From Utricularia gibba (lineage: Eukaryota > Plantae > Magnoliophyta): a stretch of DNA of 64,000 nt. The translations under genes and the position numbers were made by a program. This document shows, one piece after another, positions 38,266-64,000 of this stretch (positions are counted from its first letter, which is position 1; each line of letters opens with the position of its first letter). The notes under the pieces were generated by a model, which saw only the letters and a list, made by a program, of their open reading frames with translations, was not told the origin of the DNA and searched no databases. The stretch is taken from the NCBI GenBank assembly GCA_002189035.1, contig NEEC01000021.1, positions 806,001 through 870,000 of the forward strand. Reading direction: 5' to 3'.

Positions 38266-38371
38266 AGCCAGTTTTTGCAGGTGGAGCATCTTCAAGATTC
38301 ATGTGGGATGATGCCTCTGGGAGCACATCTGTACGAGAATCTTGATGATGCTGCAGCAGCAATGAGTGGCT
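38266..38371 (+). ncRNA. MIR172: MIR172 precursor; mature AGAAUCUUGAUGAUGCUGCAG at 38336-38356, star arm about 38281-38303
   Basis: Exact miR172c/d-type mature sequence, a complementary GUGGAGCAUCUUCAAGAUUCA arm, a lower stem AGCCA.../...UGGCU, and a TATAAAT box at 38168-38174. Confidence 0.95.
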
Positions 38372-45908: not shown

Positions 45909-47351
45909 CTATGCAGATACAGTGTCCAAGTTTACTAGGTTCTTCTCCCACTTCAAATGCAAGGAGAATGGCATCAGCACATGGCCTAAAACATGTAAAC
46001 TGGAATGACCCTCATCGTCCCTGCATGCCATCTGCACCAGGGCCTCCCAGCAACTCCATTCCAAGCTCATTTTCCTCCTGTTCATCTCCTCCAACATAAC
46101 CCCTGCCTCCTCCAGCTTCCCATTCTTGACCAGCCCCATCACAAGACGCCGGAACGTTTCGATCCGGGGGAATGCTCTGCTTAAGAGCATGGCATTCACA
46201 ACTCTCAGAGCTCCCATGTAATCTTCCTCCCTGCACAAGCCATCCGCCACGGTGCGGAATGTGGTTGCGTTTGGCTCGCATCCCTTGAGTTGCATGTCTA
46301 CTAGCATTTTGTATCCCTCTGAAGCTTTCCCGTCTGTTCTGCAGAAGTAGTCTATCAGGATGTTGTATATGACAACGTCTGGTTTGATGCTCCTCCTTTT
46401 CATCTCAAGGAGGAGATCTTTGGCTTCGCTGATTGAGCCTTTTTTGGTGAGGGCTGTCATTAGCACTCCATAGTTCACGAGCTCTGCTTTGCAGCCATGG
46501 TATTCCATGTCGAACATCAGTTTCCTGGCTTCTGTGAACTTCCCTGAAGCGCATAAGGCTTCCATCAGCAAGGCGTAGCTTACTGCATTGCCGCACTTCC
46601 CCTTCTTCCTCAGATCATGCAACACCTTGTTCGCCTGCTCTATGTCGCCCCTTGTGCAGTAAAACGCTATCAGACAATTGTATGTTACCACAGTAGGCTG
46701 AATGTTTCTCTCGAGCATTTCATCGAACATCTTCATGGCGTTCTGCAACTCGCCCTTCTGCAACCACATTTTCATCATGACGTTGTATGACACCGAGTTC
46801 GGTCTGAATCCCAACGTCGGAGCTTTTTCAAACAGCTCTGCAGCATCGGCAGCGCGCCCTCCGTCAACCAACATATTCAAAATCGTGTTGAAGGAGTGAC
46901 GCGTGCGGACGCAGTTCCACGATCTTCCCATCTCGAGAAAAACTTCCATGGCCTTGTCGATCATATCTGCCTTTCCATAGTGACGAATCAGTCCGATAAA
47001 CAGAGCTTCTTTGCATCTAATGTCGTGAGTTTTGAGGAAATCCAGGACGGCTTCCACTTCATCGAATCTCCGGGCGCGAGCAAGCTTGTACACCAAAGAA
47101 GCGAAGCATGGGTACTGATGCTTGTAGCCCATTTCATTGAAATCCCGGAAGAGAGCAAGATATTCATCGGGATTTCGGCACTGTTTCAGTTGGTCAATGA
47201 AGGGGATAGGAACCCGGATGTGCTTGACACGCGCCGTCGACTTGCAACGATGCTGGAGACAACTATTTGAGGTGATTCTGAATCCGCCGCTGCAAATATT
47301 TCTCACCATAAGCTTCTTGCAGAGACCAGGAATGGATCTGAAAACCGCCAT
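45909..47351 (-). CDS. P-class pentatricopeptide repeat protein, probably mitochondrial (480 aa, intronless)
   Basis: Tandem 35-aa PPR motifs (PNSVSYNVMMKMW, PTVVTYNCLIAFYC, PDVVIYNILIDYFC) after a basic presequence. Confidence 0.92.
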   Translation of the reverse strand: MAVFRSIPGLCKKLMVRNICSGGFRITSNSCLQHRCKSTARVKHIRVPIPFIDQLKQCRNPDEYLALFRDFNEMGYKHQYPCFASLVYKLARARRFDEVEAVLDFLKTHDIRCKEALFIGLIRHYGKADMIDKAMEVFLEMGRSWNCVRTRHSFNTILNMLVDGGRAADAAELFEKAPTLGFRPNSVSYNVMMKMWLQKGELQNAMKMFDEMLERNIQPTVVTYNCLIAFYCTRGDIEQANKVLHDLRKKGKCGNAVSYALLMEALCASGKFTEARKLMFDMEYHGCKAELVNYGVLMTALTKKGSISEAKDLLLEMKRRSIKPDVVIYNILIDYFCRTDGKASEGYKMLVDMQLKGCEPNATTFRTVADGLCREEDYMGALRVVNAMLLSRAFPRIETFRRLVMGLVKNGKLEEAGVMLEEMNRRKMSLEWSCWEALVQMACRDDEGHSSLHVLGHVLMPFSLHLKWEKNLVNLDTVSA

Positions 47352-48085: not shown

Positions 48086-51000
48086 TCATGCTCGTATGAG
48101 GCGTTTGTCGCATGATAAGATCCTGTAGTTCGCGTGAGGCCCTTCAGATGTGTCCCTCAAAGAGACATGCCATCCAAGGGCGACACCGATCTCTTGAAGC
48201 TCATCCATTAAGGCGAGCGAGTCACGGATGTATACACGGCCACCCGGTCGCAGGATTCTGTCCATTTCAAGCATGATGCTGGACATATTGCACCTAAGCC
48301 AGAAAAAGGGTATGCATAAATGTCTACAGAAAGCTCATATGCACCACTGCAACGATGACAGAAAAGTTAATCACCGAGCTGATGTCTTTCTCTGCTTAAA
48401 AACATGCTGTATTTCTGGTGATTGAAAGTGAAATAATCTATTGATCGGCGACATAAACAGGACACAAGCAAAAGAGACATTGAAAAGCACAAGCAATGCC
48501 TCCTTTTTTTTTTCCTTCTAAGATTCTAACGCTCCTAATAGTCAATTGGCAAACAGGTAAACATGCCAGATGAATAGTGAGTTAAATGAAGAGGCAAGAC
48601 GATACCGTTTATGCTCAATGGAGAAAAGTCCAGCAGCATGAATCAGGTCATAGGTTCTTGGGTATGTGTCAAATGGTTCACACCTGAAACTCATTGATGC
48701 AGTAACCAGAAACCAACCATTCATTGAGCAAACCAGGAATAAAATTACGTAAGGGAAGCCATGTTACAATTCATACCAGTCGTGCATAACTCCAATGAGA
48801 CCACGATCATAAATAACAGGCAATGTATTGGTTCCACTAACGGGGACAACATTCATCACCCAGCAATTCAGCTTGTTTTCGATAAGAGCTGATGCAAATC
48901 TGCCAGAGAATGATAAGAACCATAAGAAATATGAATAAGTTCAACTGTCTAGGCTCTTAAAAAAAGGCACAGTAGATAAAAGGCAGGAGGTAATGTACCC
49001 CCCAAATCCAGCTTTCATGTCCAATACATTTCTCATCTTATATTGGCCCCAGTGAAGTGCACGTACATAGCCCTCAATTATTTCCTTCCAGTATTTAGAT
49101 TCTGCCTTGAATAGTTCTTTCCTTGACATATATGCATCAAACTGTATGCTCTGTAGCCTATCTGGAGGATTTTGCAACCGTTCTGGCCAGGGACTAACAT
49201 TAGAGCCATATCCATTCTCCTGCAGACGGCTTATGCATGCTTTGAGATCAACATACCTAACAAAATTCAAACAAAGGAGAACATGGAAATGAAATTCAGT
49301 ACTTAGGAACTATTCTCTTGAATCTGACAACACAGGTTATGATTAAAATAGCTGCGTACCAAACATTATCAGGATCATCATCAGGCTCACAGAGGGGCGG
49401 ATGAGTTCCTTCAGCACGACTAAGATAGCAGCTATTATTCGATGGCTTTTGCCATATGGCTATGTAACCATCTTTCTTCACGAGGGTCCAACACATTCGA
49501 CTAGTGAGATTAACCATTTCTGCAGTAGATGAGTGCATGCATTAAATATATATCTCTCGATTACAGCAGTATGAAAATTGCATTCTCATGCAGCCACCCA
49601 GAAGTATTTCCAAAAAAAAAAGGTGGAGACCAGGCAGAAGAAATAATGAGTCTCTTCAATACTAGAAATGCATTTCACAAATTGAATGAGGCTTTGAGAA
49701 TAAAATCATCTCAAGGGCTACCTTCCCATTGTTGTTCAAGTGCTGGTTCATGCTTATAAACTGGCTGTGCAGCCCAAGCAAAATACCCTCCTGCCCTAAG
49801 CATCCTGTTGACTTCAAGTAGCAAAATCCCATCTAACGAACAGGAGGAGAGAAAAAAGTGCCTGTATTAGTTTAAATGGGATACATATAACATAAAGTCC
49901 AGGCGGACACTGAATTCGTTCTGAGCAATGGAAGCCATGAACGATAAAATTCTCAGGATTTGGTTTGAAGTTTCATTTTTAAAAAAGAAGACAAATTTCA
50001 ATGACAGAAATTCACAATGGCCTTTAAGCTATGCAAAAATAAGGCTGCTGAAAAAAAAAAATCAACAAAGAAGCTTGCAAGATCTAGTTCCTTATGATAC
50101 TCCACATAAAGCAACAAAATTTCAACTAAACTAACAGGTGCTCTTACATTAACATAGGCAGCAGACAAGCTTTCAAGTAATAGAATTACATACAATATAA
50201 CCATACCATCTCTGGTCCAATTGATTCTACATCTTGAGCAGTGAATAAGATCAAATGCTTGACTAGGGTAAAGTAATCGCCGTGAAACAAATGCTGCAAC
50301 CATTGCAGGAACACCACGTTCAAGGGCAAACTGGATCTGGTTCTCATGAACATCTTTTGGCGCCACAGAGAGTGTAAGGACATTGCGTGATAACAAATAA
50401 GCACCAAAACTAGCTACACCACACCCGACATCCAACACAACTCGAGTATGGCGACCAAATGCAATTTCTGGCACCATCTGAAGAACACGGGTAAAAGCAT
50501 AAATTTCCGAAGGAAACATGGATTTTGGAGAAAGTACTATAGCTCCTATGGAAACTAAGAACAAAACAATACTTTTTCAATTTGATCCAGGTACTCAACA
50601 GCCCCATGTATGAACTGTGTCCCTCCTCCAGGAAACCTGAACTTATCTTTACTAATAGTGATCCAATTTTGACCACCTTTATCCTCAACCAAACGGGCGT
50701 GAGGAACATTGCTAAACCAAACCTGCCAATGACAAAAAAATTAATCAAAATGGTCGACAACTATCAACAAGCTTAAATCACATTCGAACACCTCGAAACT
50801 GATGATAAATGTGCCATCTACATATAATTGTAATGAATAAATGAAGAGATCGAAAAATGATCAAGATGCCATTGTGACTGCACCTCATCGCGGCTTCTCG
50901 GCCATGGTATAGGTGTTCTGTAACCCTTAGGGGGAGGAACCAAACAATTCAGGCCTTTTCCTTCTTCGGGACAATGCCTCTCAAATTTTTCCCCTTTTTC

Positions 51001-51582
51001 AGTATCATGCAGCTTCTTGATCGCCTCGATATTGTCCAAACATGGTATATACTCTCTCATACTCTCAGGACACAGCGGAAGCTTCTTGATCTTAATCCTC
51101 ACATTCTCCCCCTTTCCATCAATTCCTGCATCCTCGCTCTCATTCGTTTTCGACCAACTTTCCACCAGCTCTGGGTCGTAATCACCAACCTGGAAATCAT
51201 CCGTCATCCTTCCATCCTCATCAACCACACCCATTCTTTCCAAAGACGGTGGCGGTGATGGTGGTGGCGGAGGAAGAGCAGCAACTTCTTTTGCCTCATT
51301 CCGAGTATTCACTATCGCGGGGGGCGGCGCAGTAGCGTTTATAAGGCGAGTGATATCAAATGTCTTGTTCAGATTCGGGGACAGACCGACAAAAGCAGAG
51401 TTTTTGGGCTGTGGGTTCTGTTGCGATGCGTAGAAAAGGAGCTGCTGTGATGATCCATCAGAAAAACGTTTCCCTAAATAGAAGAAAACCAGTGAGATGA
51501 GCAGAAACCCCGCGACTTTAGCGAGCGTGGTGGATCTGCAACGACCCGTGGGCAATCCGGCGCCCCCATTCGCCTTCAGCAT
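48086..51582 (-). CDS. Probable pectin/SAM-dependent methyltransferase, PMT10/11/12 clade (multi-exon)
   Basis: Type II membrane anchor, EYIPCLDN...ERHCP...[56 protein letters not shown] and [12 protein letters not shown]. Confidence 0.92.
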
Positions 51583-52429
51583 TCCGCCAATTCTCCCCGA
51601 TCCCGATCACCTACACCTCCACTCGAAGATGAAAGGCGGAACCTTTAACCAGAGAATCCTCACCGCGCGAAGGCGGTCACAGTGCAGCACGACGGAAGAG
51701 TGAGAACTCTAACCTGAAATTATAAACAAAATTCGCGTATCCATCCATGTTTCCTCTATACGACGCCGTTTAAATATACTAATTTCCTCATTAAGTACTC
51801 TTTTTTAATTGGATCTTCATTAATTAACTACTTCCAGAAACGGCGTCGAGTAGCCTGGGACACGTCTCCTTTTACTATAATTACTTTTAATTTGCAATCA
51901 AAATGGAACAATATCAGCGTAGCAAGCAGCAAGCAGCAAGCAGCAAGCAAGGAATACATTCAGCGGCGCTTCCCTGCTGCTCACCAGAAGCCTGTTCATG
52001 TCTCCCCCTCCTTGATCCATAAAGAAGCTACAAACAACTACAAACACAAAGGCCGACTCCGTCGTCTTGAATTGAAGAAATCCGAAACAAGAACTGAGCT
52101 CACTTAACTTGTAAAATGGCTGAAAACCGGTCTTTAGAGCTAAAACCTGGACTGGATGGATCTGTCTCTGCATGCCCCAAGCAGTTCACGAGTTTGAAGA
52201 GACCGGGTTAGATGCATTGCCTGCACCCTTGTGAGTCAGTTCACTAACACAACCCTCTTGATATCCGTAACTAGCTACTCTTTGAGTCTGCGCAGGCACT
52301 GTGCCAGTTTGGTTGACACAGGAGAGCAATAGAAGTGGAGAAATGCAGAGAAAACACTCGCCCCAGAACGGTATGCATTCTGAAAAGCATGTAGCAAAAC
52401 CATGAAACAAGAGAGCAGTGCATGCAGAG

Positions 52430-54110
52430 AAAGCATGCTGCCTTTTTAGTTTCAAAGAGACTACTGCAAACACAATACAGGGATGGATGGCTACCAAGAG
52501 CAAGATAATGTAGGTGTAGAAAAACCGTCAACACTATGAATGCTGGAATTGGCGAAATACGAGATGACAATTTCAATCCTCCTAGATATGTTAAAGTCTC
52601 ACTCCTACTTAATCCAGGCATGGGGCAGGCTGCTACTTGCATGGGAAGAGTTAAAAACCGTGTATTCTAATCTACTCTAAAGCAATCCCAGTCTAAGAAC
52701 TCAGCCCCACCCTAAAACCAACAGTCATGGACACAACATAATGCCTTCTGATTTCAAATAGAATACTGAAAGCACAAAACAGGGATTGCTACCAGACACA
52801 AGATATGACCTAGTAGCATCAGAGTAGAAGATGCCTACCCAAATCATCAAAATACAAGACAACAAATTACACCCTCTTAGATAAGACAAGTTCTCCCTCC
52901 TCCTTAACCCAGGCTTGGGACTGGCTGTGCTGTTTAGCACAGGCGGAGTTAAAAACTTTGTATTCTAATCTACACTACAACAATCCTAGCTGATTACTTA
53001 ACCCCACTCACAACAAGTAACTTATCCTACAAGGAGCCGTACACCATAATAGCTTACACAATAAATTACCTAAATGGGTAGGCAAGCCAGCGTTGCGATA
53101 GATGATAGAGGATGGCTGCCAAGCCTTGCAGACATTATCGATCACGAGAGTGATACCTGCTGCGATGAAAATCCCCCTTTTTTTATAAATAGCGATCGGA
53201 TTCGATCGCGGGGAAGGCTGGCAATATTTGTTTTTTTTTAGACTATTTTTTTCTGGCTCTTTTTTTTCTGGAGTCTTTTTTTCTTTTGTTGGGCCTCTTT
53301 GTCCTTTTGTTGGGCTCTTTTTTTCTTTTTTGGCCTCTTTTTTTATTTTGTTGGGCCTCTTTTTTCTTTTTTTGGGCTTTTTTTCTTTTTTTTCTTTTTT
53401 TAGCCTCTTTTTTTGGCCTATTTTTTTTTTCCTTTTTTTTGGCCTCTTTTTTGATGAATGGAGGAGCGTGGTAATCGCAACGACGATGGCGCCTTTCCTG
53501 GAGATGGAACCAAGAGGAAGAAGAATAATTAGACCGGGAAATTGATGAATCATTTGCAAAAACAAGCAACACATTTTGAATTCATTCCAGAAGTATGAAA
53601 AAGAAATCGAATCCTAGACATCGAAAACTGCAAAACTCAAATCATTCAAGCTATTTCAGAAATAAAGCAAGAGAAACTAGAAGATTGATTAATCTGTTCG
53701 ATTTTCAAAACATTGACGACAACAAAAAACGTCACGAAACAGAAATCCAACACAAGAATTGGGACAAACAAAAGATAAAACATCAAGAAATAAAACCACA
53801 CACCGAAAGGCGTAGGGGAAACATAACACAAAAACAAAACGAAGAAAGGAAAAAAAACGAGAACGAACCAAAATCAAATGAATACAAGAACGAAATGAAC
53901 TACACGATTATCGAAAGGAAAGAACAGCATTGAAAAGAAAAGAAATCATAACGGAGAGACGAAACCAACCTGATCGCTATCCCGATACCCTTTCTCAAGA
54001 AAAAAACTCTACAGATCCTACAAAAGCAAAATGCCCTAGACTAAAATTCTCTAAACCTACATTCACAAACTGAGAAACGCTGCGCATATTCGGCTCTATA
54101 TATAGTTTTC
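52430..54110 (-). ncRNA. Candidate spliced, structured long non-coding RNA, copy A (TATA 54097-54104; structured exon 53497-53070)
   Basis: Paralogous to 58850-60240 (+). Conserved 3' splice site and 5' donor, nested stems, and no conserved reading frame. Function and expression are inferred. Confidence 0.5.
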
Positions 54111-54299
54111 AAGGCAAGAGAAATCCCAAATTTTGGAAACAAGCCCATATTTCGCAATTAAGAAAAGAATTAGGGTGTGGGCTGGGTCAGTTAGAGGATG
54201 CGGTATGGGTCCATTATTGATTTAATTTGGGTCAGAATTAGAATATGGGCTGATCCAGAAAACGGTTGCGGGCTGGGCCATAATGATTGAGTTGGGTTG

Positions 54300-54963
54300 C
54301 CTATTTCTTGGGCTGGGGCCGCGTTAGTATCTGGACTGGCCTCTATTGTGGACTGGGCTTAACTCAGTGCTCGGGCTGAGCCGTATTTCGGCGGGCTGCA
54401 TCCACTATTTGGGCTGGTCTGAATTCCATGGTTAGGTTGGGTTCCCTATTTCATGGGCTGGGCCACGTTAGCATCTGGACCGGGCTCTATTGTGGACCGG
54501 CTTAACTCAGTGATTGAGCTTAGCCGTATTTCTAGCATATGGCGGGCTGCATCCACTATTTGGGCTGAGCTGAATCCCATGGTTGGGTTGACTCGCCAAA
54601 CTCTTAGGTTGGGCCGCGTTAGCATCTGGAACGGTCTCTATTCTGGGCCGGGCTTAACTGAGTGCTCGGACTGCGCGCATTTTACTATCTGGGCAGAGCC
54701 GCATCCACTGTTTGGGTTGGGGTAGCCGATTTCCTAGGCTGGGCCGCGATAGCAACTGGACCGGGCTCGATTCTAGGCCGGTCTTAATTGAGTGGACTGG
54801 ATGGGCGGAATTTTAGCATATGGGCGGGCCGCGTCAACTGATTGGGTTGGGTTGCCGATTGCTTGGGCTAGGCCGCGTTAGCATCTCGACCGGGCTCGAT
54901 TCTGGACTGAGCTTAATTGAGTGCTCGGCTGGGCCGTATTTTAGCATCTAGACCGGGCTCTAT
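54300..54963. repeat. About 5 degenerate tandem units of 130-150 bp, rich in GGGCC/TGGGCT (site II-like) motifs
   Basis: Recurring gggccgcgttagcatctggaccgggctctatt...cttaactgagtgctcgg starting near 54310, 54455, 54611, 54741 and 54871. Confidence 0.85.
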
Positions 54964-56003
54964 TATTTGTGATTTATAATTTAGAGAAATTATCTTTTGT
55001 ATTTTTTTTCGAAATGACTACCTCCATATATAATCATCTTTTTCTATTGGAAGCATTTTCAAAGGTCGCCCACCCCGCCAGCCGCCGTGCTACGACGTAC
55101 GAACCGATGGGATTTGACCGTAGGTGCATTGCATCATTTTGACTTTCTCAAGATGCGCCCCTGATTTCCTAAGTCAAACACCAGCGGGAGAAAAATATAA
55201 ATATGGAAATAAGAGGGACCAATGAGTAATAAAATTACTTTTTTAAAAAAATAAACTATTTTAAACGAAATCTTATTTTGTATATTCCTTATTAATTAAT
55301 TGTAAATTTATTAATCTGAATTTTAAGGATTATTAATCCGAATTTAATTGGATTTAATCATCGATCATTAAGTATGGTAATTACACCGCCGGATCCTTTA
55401 TTTACCGAAGTCAACATGGAAAATTGTCCTCCGGCGGCGTCGCAATGAAGGCAAGAATTTGTTACGTATAAAGACGGAAGGCAACGTGCGTATCTACATT
55501 AAGGCGTGGTTGATCCGGTTGCTATGACGCCATAGCTACCGACATCAGTGTCGTTTTTGTGAGGCTTCCTGGAGGTAAGAGGACCGGAATCATCAACGAT
55601 ATTCTTCAAGCTTCATTGCCGGTGCCAATTCGTTGCTAGATTGACGAGAGGTATGTGGATTGTTTTTCCTGTGCCGGATTTGTTTTTGTGTGGAAATGCG
55701 GATTCTGTTATGCTCTTGTTTAGGAACTTGGATTTGGAGATTGGTGGATGTTGGATCAGTTTAATTCCTTTTGCTTTTGGATACGTTGATTGTGGCATTA
55801 ATGGTAGAAATCTGCATTGAGATCCAAGCTTCTGTTTGATTGGAGCCTCGTTTAACGATGATTTTGTCGGATTTGTGGATCTGTTTGATTTCTAGTTAGC
55901 TGTTGAGTGCTTGATCAGATCTTGACCTTTGACTCGATTGAACTTCATCATTATGTTCCAACTTGTGTGTTTATGTGGATGAAAGGAACTCTTGAGATTC
56001 AGG

Positions 56004-57324
56004 ATGAAGGCATTGATTCTTGTCGGAGGGTTTGGGACCAGATTGAGGCCTTTGACATTGAGTGTGCCAAAGCCACTCGTTGATTTTGCTAACAAACCCA
56101 TGATCCTGCACCAAGTACGTTGCTTCGAACCCCTTTTTTTGCAGGCAAAAGTTCTACCTGATATGCTTCTGAACATATTCTTTGATATGAATCAGATCGA
56201 AGCTCTCAAAGCTGCTGGGGTAACTGAAGTTGTTCTTGCTATCAACTATCAGCCCGAGGTGAACTGCAGATTGGCTTCATATATTCGAATGCGGAGGTCT
56301 GCTCTTTCCTTACCCAACATGTGACTTTTTTCAGGTTATGTTGAACTTTCTGAAAGACTTCGAGGCAAAGATTGGTATAAAGATCTCCTGTTCTCAAGAG
56401 ACTGAGCCTCTGGGGACAGCAGGACCTCTTGCTTTAGCTAGGGACAAGCTCATAGACAGCTCTATGGAGCCATTCTTCGTACTTAACAGTGATGTTATCA
56501 GCGAATACCCTCTGAAGCAAATGATAGAATTTCATAAGTCGCATGGAGGTGAAGCTTCCATCATGGTGACTAAGGTAATGAAACACCTCTAAGTAGATTA
56601 TTCAATGTTTATGCTGCAGAACGGTTGCAAACTCACATGTTACTCCTCTTAGGTGGATGAGCCTTCAAAGTATGGGGTTGTTGTTATGGAAGAGACCAGT
56701 GGGCTGGTAGAAAGATTCGTTGAGAAGCCTAAGACATTCGTTGGCAACAAGATCAATGCTGGGATCTACCTTTTGAATCCATCCGTGCTCGATCGGATCG
56801 AGCTACGCCCGACATCCATCGAGAAGGAAGTGTTCCCCAAAATTGCCGCAGAGAAAAAACTGTTTGCCATGGTGTTACCAGGTTTCTGGATGGATATTGG
56901 GCAACCAAAAGACTACATTACTGGCCTGAGACTGTACCTGGACTCCCTGAGGAAACAAGCATCCCCCAAGTTGGCCTTTGGAGCTCACATTCTAGGAAAT
57001 GTCCTGGTTGACGAGACTGCAGCAATAGGTGAAGGATGCCTGATTGGCCCCGACGTTGCTATCGGACCTGGTTGCACCATCGAACCTGGCGTGAGACTGT
57101 CACGGTGCACCATCATGCGCGGCGCCCGGGTGAAAAAGCACTCTTGTGTTTCAAGCAGCATCATCGGCTGGCACTCGACGGTCGGACAGTGGGCTCGTGT
57201 GGAGAACATGACCATACTTGGAGAAGATGTCCATGTTGGTGATGAAGTGTACACCAATGGAGGTGTGGTCTTACCTCACAAAGAGATCAAGACAAACATT
57301 GTGAAGCCAGAGATAGTCATGTGA
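56004..57324 (+). CDS. VTC1: GDP-mannose pyrophosphorylase / mannose-1-phosphate guanylyltransferase (exons 56004-56114, 56196-56258, 56335-56574, 56653-57324; 361 aa)
   Basis: [41 protein letters not shown]...[14 protein letters not shown]. The exon lengths sum to 1086 nt. Confidence 0.96.
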
Positions 57325-57516
57325 AGCTAAGCATTGTGTATGGTATTATACCATGAAAGATGTATCTGTGATTCTGTACTGCTACTTTTGTTCTCCAGAA
57401 AGTGCATATTGAGTTTGGCTACAAAACAACTGCTTCTTTGTCTACAAAACCGCTCAGGGACTTCCCAAGTTCAAAATTCTTCATCCCACAGCCTCATCAC
57501 AGTGGTGGCTCCGAGT

Positions 57517-58471
57517 TTAAAGTGCAGTTGCAGCAGTGGAAGCGAGCCAAAACATGATATGGGAGGATACTACGAGAAGAAGCCATGCTACGAAAGCTAA
57601 AGAGATGGAGATCTGAAACAAGCCACATGATAGATGAGGATTCAAATGGCAGAAATTTGTCTCTTTGGAGAAGAAGAACACCACAGCAGCAGATGAGGAT
57701 GCTGCTCCAAGAGACAGTAATGATATTATCTGCAAAAAATCAGGGATAATTGTGAACACATTCTTGAAGGAACGAGAGGATATGATGGAATTTGAGCACA
57801 GAAGAATGCCAGTAGAGTTGAAGTAGAGATGCTACCCAGTCACCAACAACAGAGATGGTAATAACAGTGGGATTGTATTCATGGACCAAGTCCAATTTCA
57901 TAGCTAGCAGATCATAAGACGCAAGTATGAAGCTCCATAAACACAGAATCCCCATGGCAGCAATTAGGTAGCTGAAAAAGTGAATCAAAGGCATCCATAA
58001 GATGAAACAGCGTAGCATCTTGACAAGTAACAAGAAAAGCTAACAAAAGATGGCAAGATAAAAATGGTGTGATATCCAAGAAACAGCAGAGCATCTTGAC
58101 AAATGCTAGAGCAGAAGCATACGCATATAGGAAGTTCTCGATACCATAAAGAATACAATATCTTCACAAGTAGCAGAACTCAGGCTATAAAAGAAGTTCA
58201 TGATCCGAAAGTTCACTCCAAGAAGCATGGAACATCTTTACAAGTAAGGATCGCAAAACGAATCATTTCCAAACAAGAAGCCAATCATTTCGTGTAGCGA
58301 TCGCGCCATGAATAAACTTGAAACGAAAAATCAAGTAAAGAAAGTTTACCAGAATGCAGTAGAGGAAGAGCACCCAGTGGCGGCCGTCATGACACCGAAT
58401 GAAGCACCGGCAAACAAGAACTGCCCAGTTCTCAACACCAACGAACTCTTTTCCCCAGGAGTCCCCAACAT
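57517..58471 (-). CDS. CASP-like protein, group 5 type (exons 58471-58350, 57971-57836, 57729-57517; 156 aa)
   Basis: MLGTPGEKSSLVLRTGQFLFAGASFGVM...STAFCYLIAAMG...VVGDW-IISLLSLGAASSSA...CGLFQISISLAFVAW, a four-transmembrane CASPL pattern. Confidence 0.85.
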
Positions 58472-58849
58472 CTTCTCTCTCGCAACTACTTCTGCGTATA
58501 TCCAACCGCGTGCTGAAGGAATCGCGACTCATGACGAAGATTTATAGGTAGGCTTTTCAGGGAACAGTGAAATGCACCGGAAACTGGAAATTGAACAAAC
58601 CGCCACTCAACTGCTTCGACCAAAAGTTGTGATCTTCCTTCCGTTTGTCTGTCTGCAGTTCTAATGTCATATTTAGACGTCTAGATACTATTTGTGTTTG
58701 GGCCCAAAATTGGGGTAAATAATGGGCTAGTTGATTGGATGATTTTGTAAGGGGCCCAATTCGATTCTTCAATAACTGGGCCGGGGTTAAATTTGGAAAT
58801 ATGTACTTATTTTCAAATTTATGATTGCTTCTGCATACTTCCCGCGTAC

Positions 58850-60240
58850 TTCACGCTATATATGCAACAAGGGTTCGTTTTTTAATCTGTAGATGTGGAT
58901 TTAGGGGATTTTAGTTTATGTAGAATTTCAGGGATTGTGTTTCGGTAGTGTCTGTAGATTTCTCTTTCGAGAACGAGGACTTGCGAAAGGTTCGTTGTTT
59001 TCGTTTAATCTGTAAGATGTGCTTTCTTTTCTTTTCAATTTCTGGTTTTTTCGCTTCGGCAATCGCTTGCTGTACGTTGTTTTGATTTTTTGGTTTAGTT
59101 TTCGTGTCGCATTTTATGTAGAGTTTTTGCTTCTTTATGTTAGTTTCTTTCGTTTATCGAGATTATTGCGTTTTAATCATATTTCTTGATACTTCTTTTT
59201 CACTGATGTTTTGAAATCTGAAGTCATTCGTTCATCTTTCTGATTTCTACCATTTTGTTCCTGAAATTGCTTGCTGAACCTTATTGCCTCTCGATTCTTT
59301 GATTTTGTGTCCTCCTGGATATATTCCACAATCCACATCTTCTCTCAAGGGTTCTTGTTGAGTGTTTATGAAGAATCGTCCACTGGCTAATTGTTCTTCC
59401 TCTTGTGGCTTCATCTACAGGAAAGGCGCCATCATCGTTGCGATTATCACTATCCTCCATTCATCAGAAAAAAAAAAAGAGGCCGAAAAAAGGAGAAAAA
59501 AAAAAGCAAAAAAAGAGGCCAGAAAAAAAAAGAAGAAAAAAAGAGGCCCCCAAAAAAAGTAAAAAAAGAGGCTAGAAAAAAAAAAGAAGAAAAGAAGAGG
59601 GCTAAAAAAAAAGAAGAAAAAAAGAGTCCCCAGAAAAAAGAGGAAAACAGGCAAAAAAAAAAAAAAGAAGAAGAAGAAAGGTCCCAAAAAAAAAAGGAAT
59701 AGAGGCCCAAGAAAAGAAATATTGCCAGCCTTCCCCGCGAATGCTATTGAAAAAAAGGGGGATTTTCATCGCAGCAGGTATCACTCTCGTGATCGATAAT
59801 GTCTGCAAGGCTTGGCATCCATCCTCTATCATCTGTCGCAACGCTGGCTTGCCTATCCATTTAGGTAATTTATTGTGTAAGATATTATGGTGTACGGCCC
59901 TTTCTAGCATAAGTTACTTGTAAAGACTATTTATGTGTTGAATTTATTAGTGTAGATCAATATGAGAGGGGCTAAGTTTTTAACTCCGCCTGTGCTAAAC
60001 ATCACAGCCAGTCCCAAGCCTGGGTTGAGGAGGAGGGAGAACTTGTCTTATCTACGGGGGTGTAATTTTTTGTCTTGTATTTTGATGATTTTGGCAGGCT
60101 CTTCTACTGTGATGCTACTAGGTCATATCTTGTGTCTGGTAGTAATCCCTGTTTTGTGCTTTCAAGATTCTATAAATCAGAAAGCATTTTTGCGTATCAT
60201 TCTGGTTGCAATCCCTGTTTTGTGTCTAGGACTATTTGTT
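58850..60240 (+). ncRNA. Candidate structured long non-coding RNA, copy B (TATA 58857-58863; structured exon 59421-59864), possibly also the 5' leader of RAD51B
   Basis: Inverted paralogue of copy A with the same splice signals and stems; its similarity ends about 140 bp before the RAD51B ATG. Confidence 0.5.
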
Positions 60241-60381
60241 TTATAGTGGGGCTTAGCAGCCAGTCTCAACCATTATGTTTGCAGGCCCACACATTCATGG
60301 AGTTGCCTTCTTTTCTTTTTGCCGGGAACTCTCTCCAGTGGTTTGTACAGAATGCAATGAAGTGAACTGCATAGCTGGTTA

Positions 60382-62955
60382 ATGGCGAACAAGCTTATCA
60401 TTGAAATGGGTCTACCCCAGAAGATAGCCAATCTATTTGCAGCTCGCAATATTCGAACTGCCAAGGTGGCAAATGTTTTTTGATTTGCAGAGCTAATGTG
60501 TGAACTTGGTCCTGTGCTCACAGAATTATATGCACATTCTTAAAATGTGTGTAGGAGGCGCTCTCGCTTACAGAGTTTGAATTAATGGAGATCCTGGATG
60601 TGGGTTTAGAGCAAGTGACTGAGGGAATGACTCGAATTAGTGAAATGGCATGCCCACATTTTCAGACTGTAATGATGAAATTTGTTGTCTTTGTTTGCTA
60701 ATCCTACTTGTGAAGTTAGTGTTCAGAATGGAGCAAGCATAAGGTATGTGATGTTTTTGTTTTTCAACTGTAACTAGGCTCTGTCACTGCTGGAGCAACA
60801 GCGGAAAGATGAGCATCTAGCAGGGCATTTACCAACGATGCTAAAGGGACTTGATGCAGCACTCTGCGGTGGAATACCATTTGGTCTTGTTACAGAGTTA
60901 GTAGGTCCTGCGGGGATTGGAAAAACACAGGTGCTTTTGGCTGTTTTTTTACTTTTTTTGCATTGAAATGATTTTCTGAAATTCAAACCTGCAGTTCTGC
61001 CTGAAGCTCGCTTTGCTGGCCGCCTTACCTACACTGTATGGAGGTTTGGGTGGTCGCGTAATATATGTTGATGTGGAGTCTAAGTTTAGCTCAAGAAGGT
61101 ATCTTTTCCTTTACATGGTAGCACCGAAAAGTTTCGATTCAGGATCTTTTCCTCATAGAGGCATCTAAAATTATCTCAAGAAGATATCTTTTCCCTGTCG
61201 AAGTTGACATGGTACACATGCCTTTCAGGATGATAGAAATGGGATTCAATAGTTTCCCAGAAATATTTCGCAAGGAAAGCTTAGCACAAGAGGTTGATAT
61301 ACTGATATAATTTCTTGTTTTTTTATTTTTTCGATTCTGCGACATAAAACCTCAGAATATGTGATGTTATTTCAATGTTCCCTTGGGAAAAAAGTCATGC
61401 ACACTTCTCAGGTGGCATTGGTTTTTGATTCAGCAGCATACAGAACATTTGTCTCTGTACATCATTTGCATACCTAAATTGTTGAGAACTCAATTTTACT
61501 CTAAACGCATTATCCATCCAATGATTTCTTTGCGCTCTGTATTTATAGATGGCTGGACGGATTCTGGTTTTGCGTCCAGGATCATTGTTGGAATTCACTG
61601 AAAGGTATAACAGGAATTCCTCTTTGTACAGTTGTGCTTTTGACCTTTATACCATCCACCGCCTGAACCCATACTCTGATCCCTCTAACAAGTCGGAAGG
61701 CAGAATTTAGGACTTGTGCATCCATCTTCTTATAGTCTGGTTTTTTCAGCATCCTTCGCCCTTTCATTGGAACCTAAGTTCTTTAACCATTTGACATACC
61801 TGTGAAACATGCTCCGATGGATTCTTTATCTTCTATATTTCCAACTCCCATGGCATTCATTGACTTCACTGATTTCATCATGGACTTGATAGTGATCTTG
61901 TTTTTTTTTCCAGCTTGCAGCAATTGAAGGTCACATTTCTCCAGGATAATGTGAGGCTACTTATAGTTGACAGCATGGCAGCTCTTGTTTCTGGGTTACC
62001 TCCCTTTACTCAAGTCTATCATTATTTCCTTCTTAATTTTTCTGTTTACATCTTGTGTTTCCTATGTGGGGAAGGTGACAAATTATGCTTTATAAGTTGT
62101 ACTATTGGTCCCCTTTGATCTTGTAGACTTCTTGTTTAAAAAAATCTTACGGCTTGTGGTTTTGTTTTTGTAGAGAATATGATCAGGGGCCTACAAGGCA
62201 TCATCCACTGGGTTGGCATATATCATTTATGAAGTGAGCATCTGATCAGCACCATCTTCTTCTTATTTCATCGCATTGATATACAGGCATCCATTGCCTT
62301 ATTCAGATCACTGGCAGCATTTTCTCGGATGCCTGTTGTCATAACTAATCATGTTCGATCTCAAGGCCATGAAACATCTCAGTACATGTTCCAGGTTCTT
62401 GAACTCCTATCGTGCTCGCTTCATTTGTGTTCATAATTTGAAAACAAATGATCTTCATGCTGAATTATAGTAAGGCTTGGTGCATTGCAGAAAAAAGCTG
62501 ACGCCGAGCATCATCCTCCCAAGTCCGAGTCCCATCTTGTTGCCACATTGGGTATTCACTGGGCGCATGCTGTTAGCATTCGCCTTGTGTTAGAATCAAG
62601 ATCAGGTCGTTTTTTTTCGTATAATGCAGATACTTATTTAAACATACTTACTGAAATAAATTAGCTATTGAGTGCAGGGAAAAGGATCCTTAGGATTGCA
62701 AAATCGCCAATATCCCCATCTTTGGGATTCCTTTTCACCATAACTGCATCTGGGATCTCGTTGCTTGATGATGAAGGAATCGACATGGCTGGTTCGGACG
62801 CAAGCAAAATAAGCTGCCAAGGTATGCCAGAACCTCTTTTCTTTCTGTCATATGTGTTCAAAGATACCACCATGTCTAACTAAGATGTTGCTTCTCCCCC
62901 GCCTGTCTTGAATTTCTTGGATGCAGGCCATGGCCAAATCCATATGCCACCATGA
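60382..62955 (+). CDS. RAD51B: DNA repair protein RAD51 homolog 2 (multi-exon)
   Basis: MANKLIIEMGLPQKIANLFAARNIRTAK, Walker A LTELVGPAGIGKTQ, VIYVDVESKFSSRR, RLLIVDSMAAL, LGIHWAHAVSIRLVLE and RIAKSP. Confidence 0.93.
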
Positions 62956-64000
62956 TCGTTGCCATGACCATGCAGAGCAGTAAAAAAGATTGTGCAGACA
63001 CATTAGGTTAGTGGTTCACATCGTTAGGCAGTGCATAGAGATTGAATTTCCCTCATGAGCCAAATGCCTCTAGATTATCAATATAAAGGTTTATCTGTTC
63101 TTTTGCGGAGTATTACTACTCGGAAGAAACATATGTTTTCACTAATCACTACAAAAGCTAGCATTTCTGTTGTACAATTGCAAATGTTGTACTGCATTCT
63201 TGTACCTTTCCGTTTCCCATTTCATCATATCTTGTTCACTTTTTTTTTTTTTTTTTCAATTGATTGCACTGAGTGGGATCCTCAATGAGACGGATGCCTC
63301 AAGGGGGGATATTTGGCATCTCCATTCCCCTGCTCCTCGATAGACGCAATGCTCGGAGGGCTGAGGGTTAATAGGTTGCATACATAACTATATATCAAAT
63401 ATGATATAATAAATTTAATTATTATGAAAAGTGAAAATTAAAAATGATACAAATTCGTATATATTTGTGTATATTAAGCACAATTAAGCGTCAAGTTATC
63501 TGTATTTTATTATATTAATAGATCATTACTTCTTAAAGCAACATAATTATCAGCAAATACTTTTTTTGTATAGAAGGAAGTAATAGTAGGGCATAAAATG
63601 TAAACACACTTACGTGCAATAGAATGAGAGTAGTTAGTTACCGGCAACACTGTCCACGTGACTAGCACATGGTATATGGTCGGAATTCCGTTACACGAAA
63701 AGCAAGGTGCTTTGGGAGAAAAGTGGAATAGGTTAGTTAAGAGTTACTTACTACCTGATGTTGGGTTGATTCCAGCAACATCTTCTTCTGTTCTTGCAAG
63801 CCAAGATGAGATAATGTGTCTCTATTGAACAAATGTGTGTTGCCGCATGTGGGTTCCTGATAAGAAGAAACAAAAAACTGGTTGTTTTTCTGAGTTCGAT
63901 CAGCTTCTCAAGGATTTGAGCAACCCAGCAACAAGAAACTGTGAGTGGATAGAGCTCGCTGCTCTCAAGGTGTAGGAGGAAGGTGCAACTGAATTGAAAG

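Follow-up and report, generated by a model that had tools for sequence, protein, structure and literature searches.

How does a plant non-coding RNA acquire its 3' end when an intact self-cleaving ribozyme lies in the intron that follows its second exon? The question is raised by a locus of Utricularia gibba contained in a stretch of 64,000 nucleotides (contig NEEC01000021.1 of assembly GCA_002189035.1, positions 806,001 to 870,000 of the forward strand), referred to below as the window and numbered from its first nucleotide. Two mirror-image copies of a spliced long non-coding RNA (lncRNA) gene, copy A on the minus strand and copy B on the plus strand, lie there ~5.9 kb apart, each with a twister-P1 element in its second intron. 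They are best regarded as paralogues with a common layout: a TATA box, a short exon 1, intron 1, an exon 2 of ~430 nt and intron 2. They can be considered a lineage-specific gene pair of a divergent, compact Lamiales genome, probably transcribed by RNA polymerase II (Pol II), in which self-cleavage would compete with splicing and yield an RNA without poly(A) in which exons 1 and 2 are followed by a tail; the chances that this reading is correct are, in our estimate, about even.

Twister ribozymes are widespread in eukaryotes. To our knowledge, no function has been established for them outside some animal retrotransposons. The animal representatives sit at the 5' ends of retrotransposons lacking long terminal repeats (non-LTR retrotransposons; PMC8501958, PMC7761336). 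No function of twisters is known in plants; the rice twisters (Osa-1-4), located in the untranslated regions (UTRs) of protein genes, are active in vitro, their function being unknown (PMC10226581).

The Twister Ribozymes of Intron 2

A search of Rfam left exon 2, the central exon of the original prediction made for this DNA, without a family match at E<=5 except for a chance 15-bit sR55 hit on the opposite strand, and brought to light in intron 2 a twister that the prediction had missed. Since the role of the "central exon" is now read differently, this omission matters. The ribozyme units and their surroundings are as follows.

52891..52955, minus strand: twister-P1 of copy A; RF03160, 68.8 bits, E 1.5e-13, full model 1-68; predicted cut 52951/52950
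59977..60041, plus strand: twister-P1 of copy B; RF03160, 62.5 bits, E 9.5e-12; predicted cut 59981/59982
52596..52657, minus strand: decayed twister of the second tandem unit of copy A; RF03160, 17.9 bits, E 0.35, several broken pairs
52758..52890, minus strand: block 3' of the copy A twister, 90-97% A/B identity, ending in a pyrimidine tract and CAG
60042..60173, plus strand: conserved block 3' of the copy B twister, from the A/B repeat and alignment
60187..60284, plus strand: remnant of the second unit in copy B, from the unit alignment; the candidate acceptor 60284/60285 follows

The copy A twister passes the gathering score of RF03160 (68.8 versus 67.2 bits in Rfam). Both twisters lie on the transcribed strand and have kept the U-A dinucleotide for cleavage as well as an intact GCC / GUCCCAAGCC / GGAGGGA core. 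The copy B element, which differs from that of copy A by one loop base and an A-to-G change in the UAAA linker, very likely belongs to the twister-P1 family despite its sub-threshold score, as judged from its sequence; a G in the same linker is likewise present in a second accession of the species, X1 (see below). The predicted cut, at the U-A step after model position 5, is located 119 nt (copy A) and 117 nt (copy B) past the exon 2 donor.

The ribozyme is part of a tandem unit of ~298 nt. The second unit is decayed or deleted in both copies, copy B retaining only its tail, and unit 1, consisting of the twister and ~190 nt, is 90-97% identical between them. The second of the two blocks of high A/B identity in this part of the locus opens at the first nucleotides of the twister and extends ~190 nt past the ribozyme; the pyrimidine tract and CAG that close it are the part kept in all four units of the unit alignment.

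Transcription and Processing of the Copy A RNA

Logan contigs of four RNA runs (X1, X2, X8 and X9) were placed on positions 48300-54200; such contigs are strandless and their ends imprecise, and the library types were guessed. Run X1 comes from a different study and accession, 1-3% divergent from the reference. The original prediction had left transcription as a question, which is answered for copy A by spliced RNA contigs. The introns of the neighbouring methyltransferase gene (PMT) and the intergenic stretch have zero depth, and the signal is therefore RNA and not DNA carry-over. The RNA depth of copy A is comparable to that of the PMT mRNA. The exons and introns of the two copies can be described as follows.

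54096..54105, minus strand: TATA box of copy A, CTATATATAG, from the sequence; aligns with the copy B TATA box
53970..54075, minus strand: exon 1 of copy A; 5' end inferred from the TATA box, RNA to ~54051
53498..53969, minus strand: intron 1 of copy A, 472 nt, GT..AG; joint present in three RNA runs
53070..53497, minus strand: exon 2 of copy A, 428 nt, composed of a 5' domain, an A-rich tract and a 3' domain; RNA joints at both borders
53233..53452, minus strand: A-rich tract of copy A, a degenerate minisatellite of ~21-27 nt with A-runs parted by GAGGCC/GGCCCA
52380..53069, minus strand: intron 2 of copy A, 690 nt, containing both twister units; X1 joint 53070 to 52379
52008..52379, minus strand: exon 3 of copy A, from the X1 joint and a contig at 52008-52214, extending at least to 52008; without similarity to copy B
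58857..58864, plus strand: TATA box of copy B, from the sequence and the A/B alignment
58990..59420, plus strand: intron 1 of copy B, predicted from homology to the copy A donor and acceptor only
59421..59864, plus strand: exon 2 of copy B, 444 nt, predicted; same splice motifs and stems as in copy A

Exon 2 carries the acceptor CAG/GAAAGGCGCCA and the donor TAG/GTAATT in both copies. The joint 53496/7 to 53969/70, which skips 472 nt flanked by GT..AG on the minus strand, is present in runs X2, X8 and X9, and the joint 53070 to 52379, skipping 690 nt, in run X1. Because RNA joints occur at both borders, copy A exon 2 spans exactly 53497-53070, and both of the splice sites proposed for it from the sequence are used in copy A RNA.

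Transcription, the two splice junctions of copy A, a retained start of intron 2 and contig ends on either side of the cut are all observed in the RNA. In X2 a single 627-nt contig joins exon 1 (to ~54051) to exon 2 and continues for 112 nt into the unspliced intron 2, halting at 52958, 7 nt short of the cut, without a loose A-tail and with nothing downstream. In X8 and X9 the contigs cross the exon 2 donor at exon-level depth (7.5 versus 7.9 and 7.0 versus 8.0, respectively), and neither exon 3 nor an exon 2-exon 3 junction was seen among them. X1 has one contig crossing from exon 2 to exon 3, one within exon 3 (52008-52214), and a 227-nt contig that starts at 52938, 12 nt past the cut, and runs through the ribozyme. 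No contig of the four runs covers the cut site at 52939-52957; this stretch is considered uncovered because the contigs listed account for all of the depth in the bin 52831-53027. The donor TAG/GTAATT thus has two fates: it is used in X1, as had been proposed, and it is bypassed by the main assembled RNA of X2, X8 and X9, which reaches the cut site.

Such a pattern, with contig ends flanking the cut, is what would be expected of efficient self-cleavage competing with splicing, and can be taken as a hint of it. Splicing of intron 2 would lead to an ordinary RNA of exons 1, 2 and 3, and prior cutting by the ribozyme to one of exons 1 and 2 with a tail of ~119 nt, ending in a 2',3'-cyclic phosphate and without poly(A). 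From this pattern we infer that the twister cleaves in vivo, and the cleaved form may be a deliberate product.

The proposal that pairing of the exon ends favours back-splicing of exon 2 is unsupported: only forward joints, none from the 3' end of exon 2 to its 5' end, were found in the four RNA runs, although contigs rarely keep such junctions.

The gene is apparently non-coding. No open reading frame (ORF) running from exon 1 into exon 2 of copy A was found when the sequence was read. A frame is open through copy A exon 2 owing to its A-richness and is stopped at 59560-59562 in copy B, in agreement with the claim that no reading frame is conserved. In a 21-codon ORF at the end of exon 2 all three A/B differences change amino acids. 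The translated 3' domain of exon 2 had no candidate homologue among 5.8 billion proteins. Altogether, the original prediction of a duplicated spliced non-coding gene is supported, with a TATA box at its start and exon borders exactly as proposed.

The Inverted Duplication

The pairing of copy A (exon 2 at 53497-53070, minus strand) with copy B (59421-59864, plus strand) as a duplicated gene is confirmed by four inverted arms.

53013-53184 and 59750-59921: inverted arm of 172 nt, 95%
52833-52958 and 59974-60099: inverted arm of 126 nt, 94%
52758-52831 and 60100-60173: inverted arm of 74 nt, 95%
53447-53512 and 59406-59471: inverted arm of 66 nt, 88%

In a pairwise alignment of both loci in the same orientation, the A/B identity is 35-70% from the promoter to the end of intron 1. 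Exon 2 starts at 88%, falls to 40-78% within its A-rich tract and reaches 95-100% in its final ~150 nt, a level that is kept for 57 nt into intron 2. In the spacer of ~55 nt that follows, similarity is undetectable (z 0.6); identity is back to 90-97% over the ~200 nt of the twister block, and none is found beyond. The profile matches the earlier description of structured parts that are alike and of a promoter, intron 1 and A-rich tract that have diverged. Compared with dinucleotide shuffles, the local alignment of the copies gives z 11.8 for the promoter and exon 1 and 7.9 for intron 1, and z -1.6, that is no similarity, for the sequence beyond the duplicated unit on the copy A exon 3 side. 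Because the promoter, exon 1 and intron 1 are homologous between the copies, the whole intron-containing gene was duplicated as DNA and not retroposed.

The Fold of Exon 2

The ends of exon 2 are predicted to pair with each other in a long-range closing stem. Its strands in copy A, identified from folds and duplex energy, are:

53474..53494, minus strand: 5' strand, AGGCGCCA..CGUUGCGAU
53080..53099, minus strand: 3' strand, AUCGCAACG-C-UGGC-UU-GCCU

The stem, of 4+4+9 bp, is present in silico in the minimum free energy (MFE) folds of both single sequences and in the two-sequence RNAalifold consensus, as the original prediction had it. The end-to-end duplex energy is -24.4 kcal/mol in copy A and -24.7 kcal/mol in copy B, as compared to ~-12 to -13 kcal/mol (sd 2.8) for mononucleotide shuffles of the exon ends, which reached the observed value once in 1000 trials for A and never in 1000 for B. 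Copy A has an A at position 53099 and copy B a G, both of which pair with U, so that the A-U or G-U pairing noted earlier holds. The consensus contains the inner stems expected, UGCCAGCCUU/AAGGCUUGGCA, AUCAC/GUGAU and, for the third, the central pairs CCCC/GGGG, and further holds UGCCA-GCCUU/AAGGC-UGGCA and GCAG/CUGC. The full-length exon 2 of copy A folds better than shuffles (z -3.3), and the core without the A-rich tract gives z -3.35 (A) and -2.16 (B). On the best reading of these models, exon 2 would be a bipartite folded core with paired ends, its 3' domain a multi-helix junction, interrupted by a variable A-rich minisatellite. The closing stem may form in cells.

The CCCC/GGGG stem of copy A is tipped by a palindromic hairpin, GCGAUCG-AAUC-CGAUCGC (53176-53205, minus strand), that is missing from copy B and has three changes in accession X1; it represents a variable apical loop. 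A hairpin hiding the exon 2 donor appeared in the MFE fold of copy A only, with z-scores that are not significant, and was rejected. The GC islands of the exon 2 minisatellite (53290-53378 and 59704-59709) often read GGCCCA/AGCCCA, the complement of the promoter-clustered site II motif.

Loose ends of the RNA contigs at 53101 (X8, X9) and 53133 (X1) agree with the 3' domain of exon 2 over part of its length and then go over into sequence that is related to it and yet distinct. They have the appearance of additional exon 2 paralogues, expressed from elsewhere in the genome and more strongly diverged. In one of them the 3' strand of the closing stem is altered at three positions and reads UAUCCCGACCCUGG; if the closing stem matters, this paralogue is expected to have GGUCGGGAU-like changes in the 5' strand.

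Alternative Explanations

Several observations weigh against a functional, ribozyme-terminated RNA. At 62.5 bits, the copy B twister stays below the RF03160 gathering score of 67.2. Of the words sampled from copy B, <=2% occur in the listed RNA runs, a share that words common to both copies could explain, so that no convincing expression of copy B is seen. No single library shows both cleavage products, the contig evidence is strandless with imprecise ends, and X1 alone, 1-3% divergent from the reference, provided the joint between exons 2 and 3 as well as the fragment past the cut. For copy B, the complete exon 2 has a fold no more stable than those of its shuffles (z -0.61). Five of the 13 changes examined in the folded core (nine A/B substitutions and four X1 polymorphisms) are located in predicted pairs, compared to 53% expected (p=0.23), and the two-copy comparison contains no compensatory double change in the stems and no covariation. 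X1 differs from the reference at 5/161 positions of the 3' domain of exon 2 and at 4/227 of the twister unit, and at 4/207 in exon 3 and 10/797 in the PMT 5' exon, the divergence of the conserved blocks being no lower. No homologue outside this genome came out of protein, metagenome and syntenic-locus searches. Finally, that the internal A-rich tract might do the work of a poly(A) tail, perhaps as a site for PABP, is purely speculative.

RNA-level constraint, as claimed in the original prediction, is accordingly not demonstrable from two copies, the substitutions not avoiding stems; the single pair-preserving change is the one-sided replacement of A-U by G-U at 53099, and the change at 53484 loses a marginal pair. 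High identity of paralogues need not mean selection at the RNA level, as inverted repeats can undergo gene conversion, and since the divergence of X1 in the blocks is not reduced, conversion between the inverted repeats is a real alternative for the ~95% identity.

Of the alternatives, concerted evolution without function survives best, and is nevertheless unlikely. An old duplication would have been followed by partial homogenising of the copies by gene conversion; the transcripts would be of low consequence, the closing stem a roleless inherited inverted repeat and the twister a passenger. Both high-identity blocks are ~5% diverged, as from one recent event, X1 departs from the reference in them as much as elsewhere, and stems are not avoided by the changes. 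Copy B, apparently silent, is equally conserved, and the syntenic loci of three other Lamiales are without an orthologue, which is in line with the same explanation. However, the block borders coincide with functional borders, namely the polypyrimidine tract with its acceptor and the first nucleotides of the twister, and the ~55-nt spacer between the blocks is rearranged beyond recognition, so that at least two separate conversion tracts are required. Moreover, unit 2 is decayed while unit 1 is intact in both copies, and copy A reaches an RNA depth like that of a neighbouring mRNA.

A mobile-element relic is distinctly improbable. According to this explanation, the twister unit (the ribozyme and ~230 nt, once in tandem) is the remnant of a ribozyme-bearing non-autonomous retroelement, a twister analogue either of the retrozymes or of the Schistosoma 5'-twister non-LTR elements; exon 2, with its inverted-repeat ends and A-rich interior, would be an exonised element, and the lncRNA would merely cross such elements. 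Eukaryotic twisters are indeed linked to retrotransposons (PMC8501958, PMC7761336), and type-P1 twisters have been reported to be enriched in plant class I transposable elements (PMC11933835). The tandem arrangement of the ~298-nt units, the resumption of A/B homology exactly at the twister 5' end and the additional expressed paralogues represented by the RNA loose ends also fit. On the other hand, the unit has no LTR pair, no ORF and no poly(A) or simple-repeat tail, a tRNA-Met primer-binding site and a second ribozyme upstream of exon 2 are absent, and no target-site duplication is present at the ends of exon 2 or of the unit. The duplication spans the promoter and two introns, and is hence DNA-mediated, and the copy number is low, two in the 64-kb window. 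The LTR and target-site-duplication hallmarks of a retroelement, against which the original prediction had wished to be checked, were sought at this locus and not found.

Further identities were tried and can be rejected briefly. A plant retrozyme is contradicted by the lack of a ribozyme-bearing LTR pair, with only adjacent tandem units, the second decayed and none upstream of exon 2, and by the lack of a tRNA-Met primer-binding site in the region at <=2 mismatches. A miniature inverted-repeat transposable element with terminal inverted repeats would have to explain exon 2 ends that are imperfect over ~20 nt and flanks (GGAA/ ... /ACCC in A, /ATCC in B) without duplication. The C/D-like boxes of a snoRNA host, seen by eye past the twister, are not kept in copy B, and Rfam scores are <=15-16 bits; a tRNA-like element of the GUT15/CR20 type is not indicated by ARAGORN, with 0 genes in 51800-60500; and a triple-helix end of the MALAT1 type would need U-rich motifs and a terminal A-rich tract, but close to the 3' end only one U run occurs, the U5 of the cut site, and the A-rich tract lies inside the exon.

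Neighbouring Genes and Synteny

Downstream of copy A, on the same strand, lies the PMT-type methyltransferase gene (Pfam Methyltransf_29), whose mRNA contigs begin at ~51704-51675, downstream of its own TATA-like motifs. Downstream of copy B, also on the same strand, is a RAD51 paralogue with its ATG at 60382, whose RAD51-type exon matches Rad51-annotated genes of Salvia and Rehmannia; a good candidate acceptor (60284/60285) is located 97 nt upstream of this ATG. At 60172-60178 (plus strand) copy B reads TATAAAT where copy A has TATTTGAAAT; the 3-nt difference creates a TATA-like box ~205 nt upstream of the ATG of the RAD51 paralogue.

This arrangement may suggest that the copies serve as leaders or insulators for the downstream genes. 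Copy B would be a captured promoter and 5' leader whose twister intron gates the mRNA of the RAD51 paralogue, and the cut in copy A may stop read-through into the PMT promoter. Such roles are quite unlikely. They draw on the same-strand adjacency of both copies to the genes that follow, on the acceptor in front of the RAD51-paralogue ATG, and on the copy A RNA, which ends at the ribozyme in three libraries, with zero depth from there to the PMT start. None of the joints in the four RNA runs, however, links the copy A exons to PMT, whose contigs start behind TATA-like motifs of its own; copy B is without RNA support, and the TATAAAT at 60172-60178 could serve the RAD51 paralogue independently.

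Between the two copies there are a GDP-mannose pyrophosphorylase (GMP) gene and a CASP-like gene. A tandem array of ~130-150-nt repeats (54160-54950) separates the TATA box of copy A from the GMP gene and contains 15 of the 62 TGGGCY (site II-like) motifs of the window, all on the plus strand. One further minus-strand TGGGCY is located just outside the array, at 54142-54147 (16 in all), and a smaller cluster of five such motifs lies upstream of the copy B TATA box (58699-58782). Elsewhere in the window, a MIR172 precursor hairpin was recognised at 38271-38366 (plus strand; 69.3 bits, E 3.4e-13, Rfam gathering score 70).

The best matches of a neighbouring PPR protein are from Lamiales, at only 61-67%, and the genes are packed very closely. 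The PPR gene of Salvia and of Rehmannia immediately follows the RAD51 paralogue on one strand. In the window, the RAD51 paralogue (60382-63000) and the PPR gene (45909-47351) are arranged head to head across an interval of 13 kb that contains the lncRNA copies, PMT, GMP and the CASP-like gene. As the RAD51/PPR order differs from that of Salvia and Rehmannia, a local rearrangement tied to the inverted duplication is indicated. At the syntenic loci of Rehmannia, Paulownia and Salvia, reached via the PPR gene, no twister and no blastn match was found, and hence the comparison with other eudicots that had been envisaged for the lncRNA gave nothing at these loci. The GMP contig of Genlisea is not syntenic. 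Exact-pattern scans of metagenome contigs gave 0 matches for the exon 2 core and 0 for the 3' half of the twister.

Comparison with Known Systems

The 3' end of the vertebrate MALAT1 and NEAT1_2 was reportedly found by Wilusz et al. in 2008 and 2012 to be made by RNase P at a tRNA-like fold, and to be closed by a triple helix of A-rich and U-rich tracts. MALAT1 and the Utricularia lncRNA would have in common a structure-specific cleavage in place of polyadenylation and a genomically encoded A-rich tract. In contrast to the terminal triple helix of MALAT1, the A-rich tract is here internal, ~280 nt from the cut, and no U-rich partners were seen. Self-cleaving ribozymes are also present in animal introns, such as the CPEB3 ribozyme, which resembles that of hepatitis delta virus, and the intronic hammerheads of amniotes. 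As in the locus described here, a small ribozyme lies in a Pol II intron and its cutting must compete with splicing, but the ribozyme classes and lineages are others and the hosts are protein-coding.

Retrozymes are ribozyme-bearing repeats without ORFs (PMC4918200), and 5'-twister non-LTR retrotransposons have been described as well (PMC8501958). The twister units resemble both in being ORF-less, ribozyme-bearing and repeated, possibly of tandem origin; they differ in lacking LTRs, a primer-binding site and target-site duplications, and in that the ribozyme is inside a spliced gene duplicated as DNA.

Among plant RNAs, GUT15 of Arabidopsis is the nearest analogue in functional terms; it is a capped and spliced Pol II intergenic lncRNA from whose last intron a tRNA-like element is processed out, inhibiting the splicing of the host intron (PMC6152437). 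Both are spliced lncRNAs, that of Utricularia probably also a Pol II product, with an intronic structured element. The tRNA-like RNA of GUT15 is cut by cellular enzymes, whereas the element here is a self-cleaving ribozyme.

Copies A and B share the fold and the conserved core of the type-P1 plant twisters (RF03160), from which copy B and accession X1 deviate by the G in the UAAA linker. Unlike the rice twisters, the ribozyme is here assigned to a mapped intron; its host is a duplicated lncRNA gene that is expressed, and RNA contigs end on either side of its cut. The literature search yielded no description of a twister in an lncRNA intron or in 3'-end formation.

Significance

A wider generalisation, namely that this gene pair represents a class of plant lncRNAs in which an intronic twister makes the mature 3' end, an internal A-rich tract stands in for poly(A) and a long-range stem closes the exon, is doubtful. 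If it held, the balance between splicing and self-cleavage would set the isoform produced and its amount as well as the transcription reaching the downstream gene, and it would be the first cellular role assigned to a twister ribozyme in plants. In this locus an intact twister occupies a defined place within a non-coding gene that is expressed, spliced and duplicated, so that the purpose of twister cutting is directly testable.

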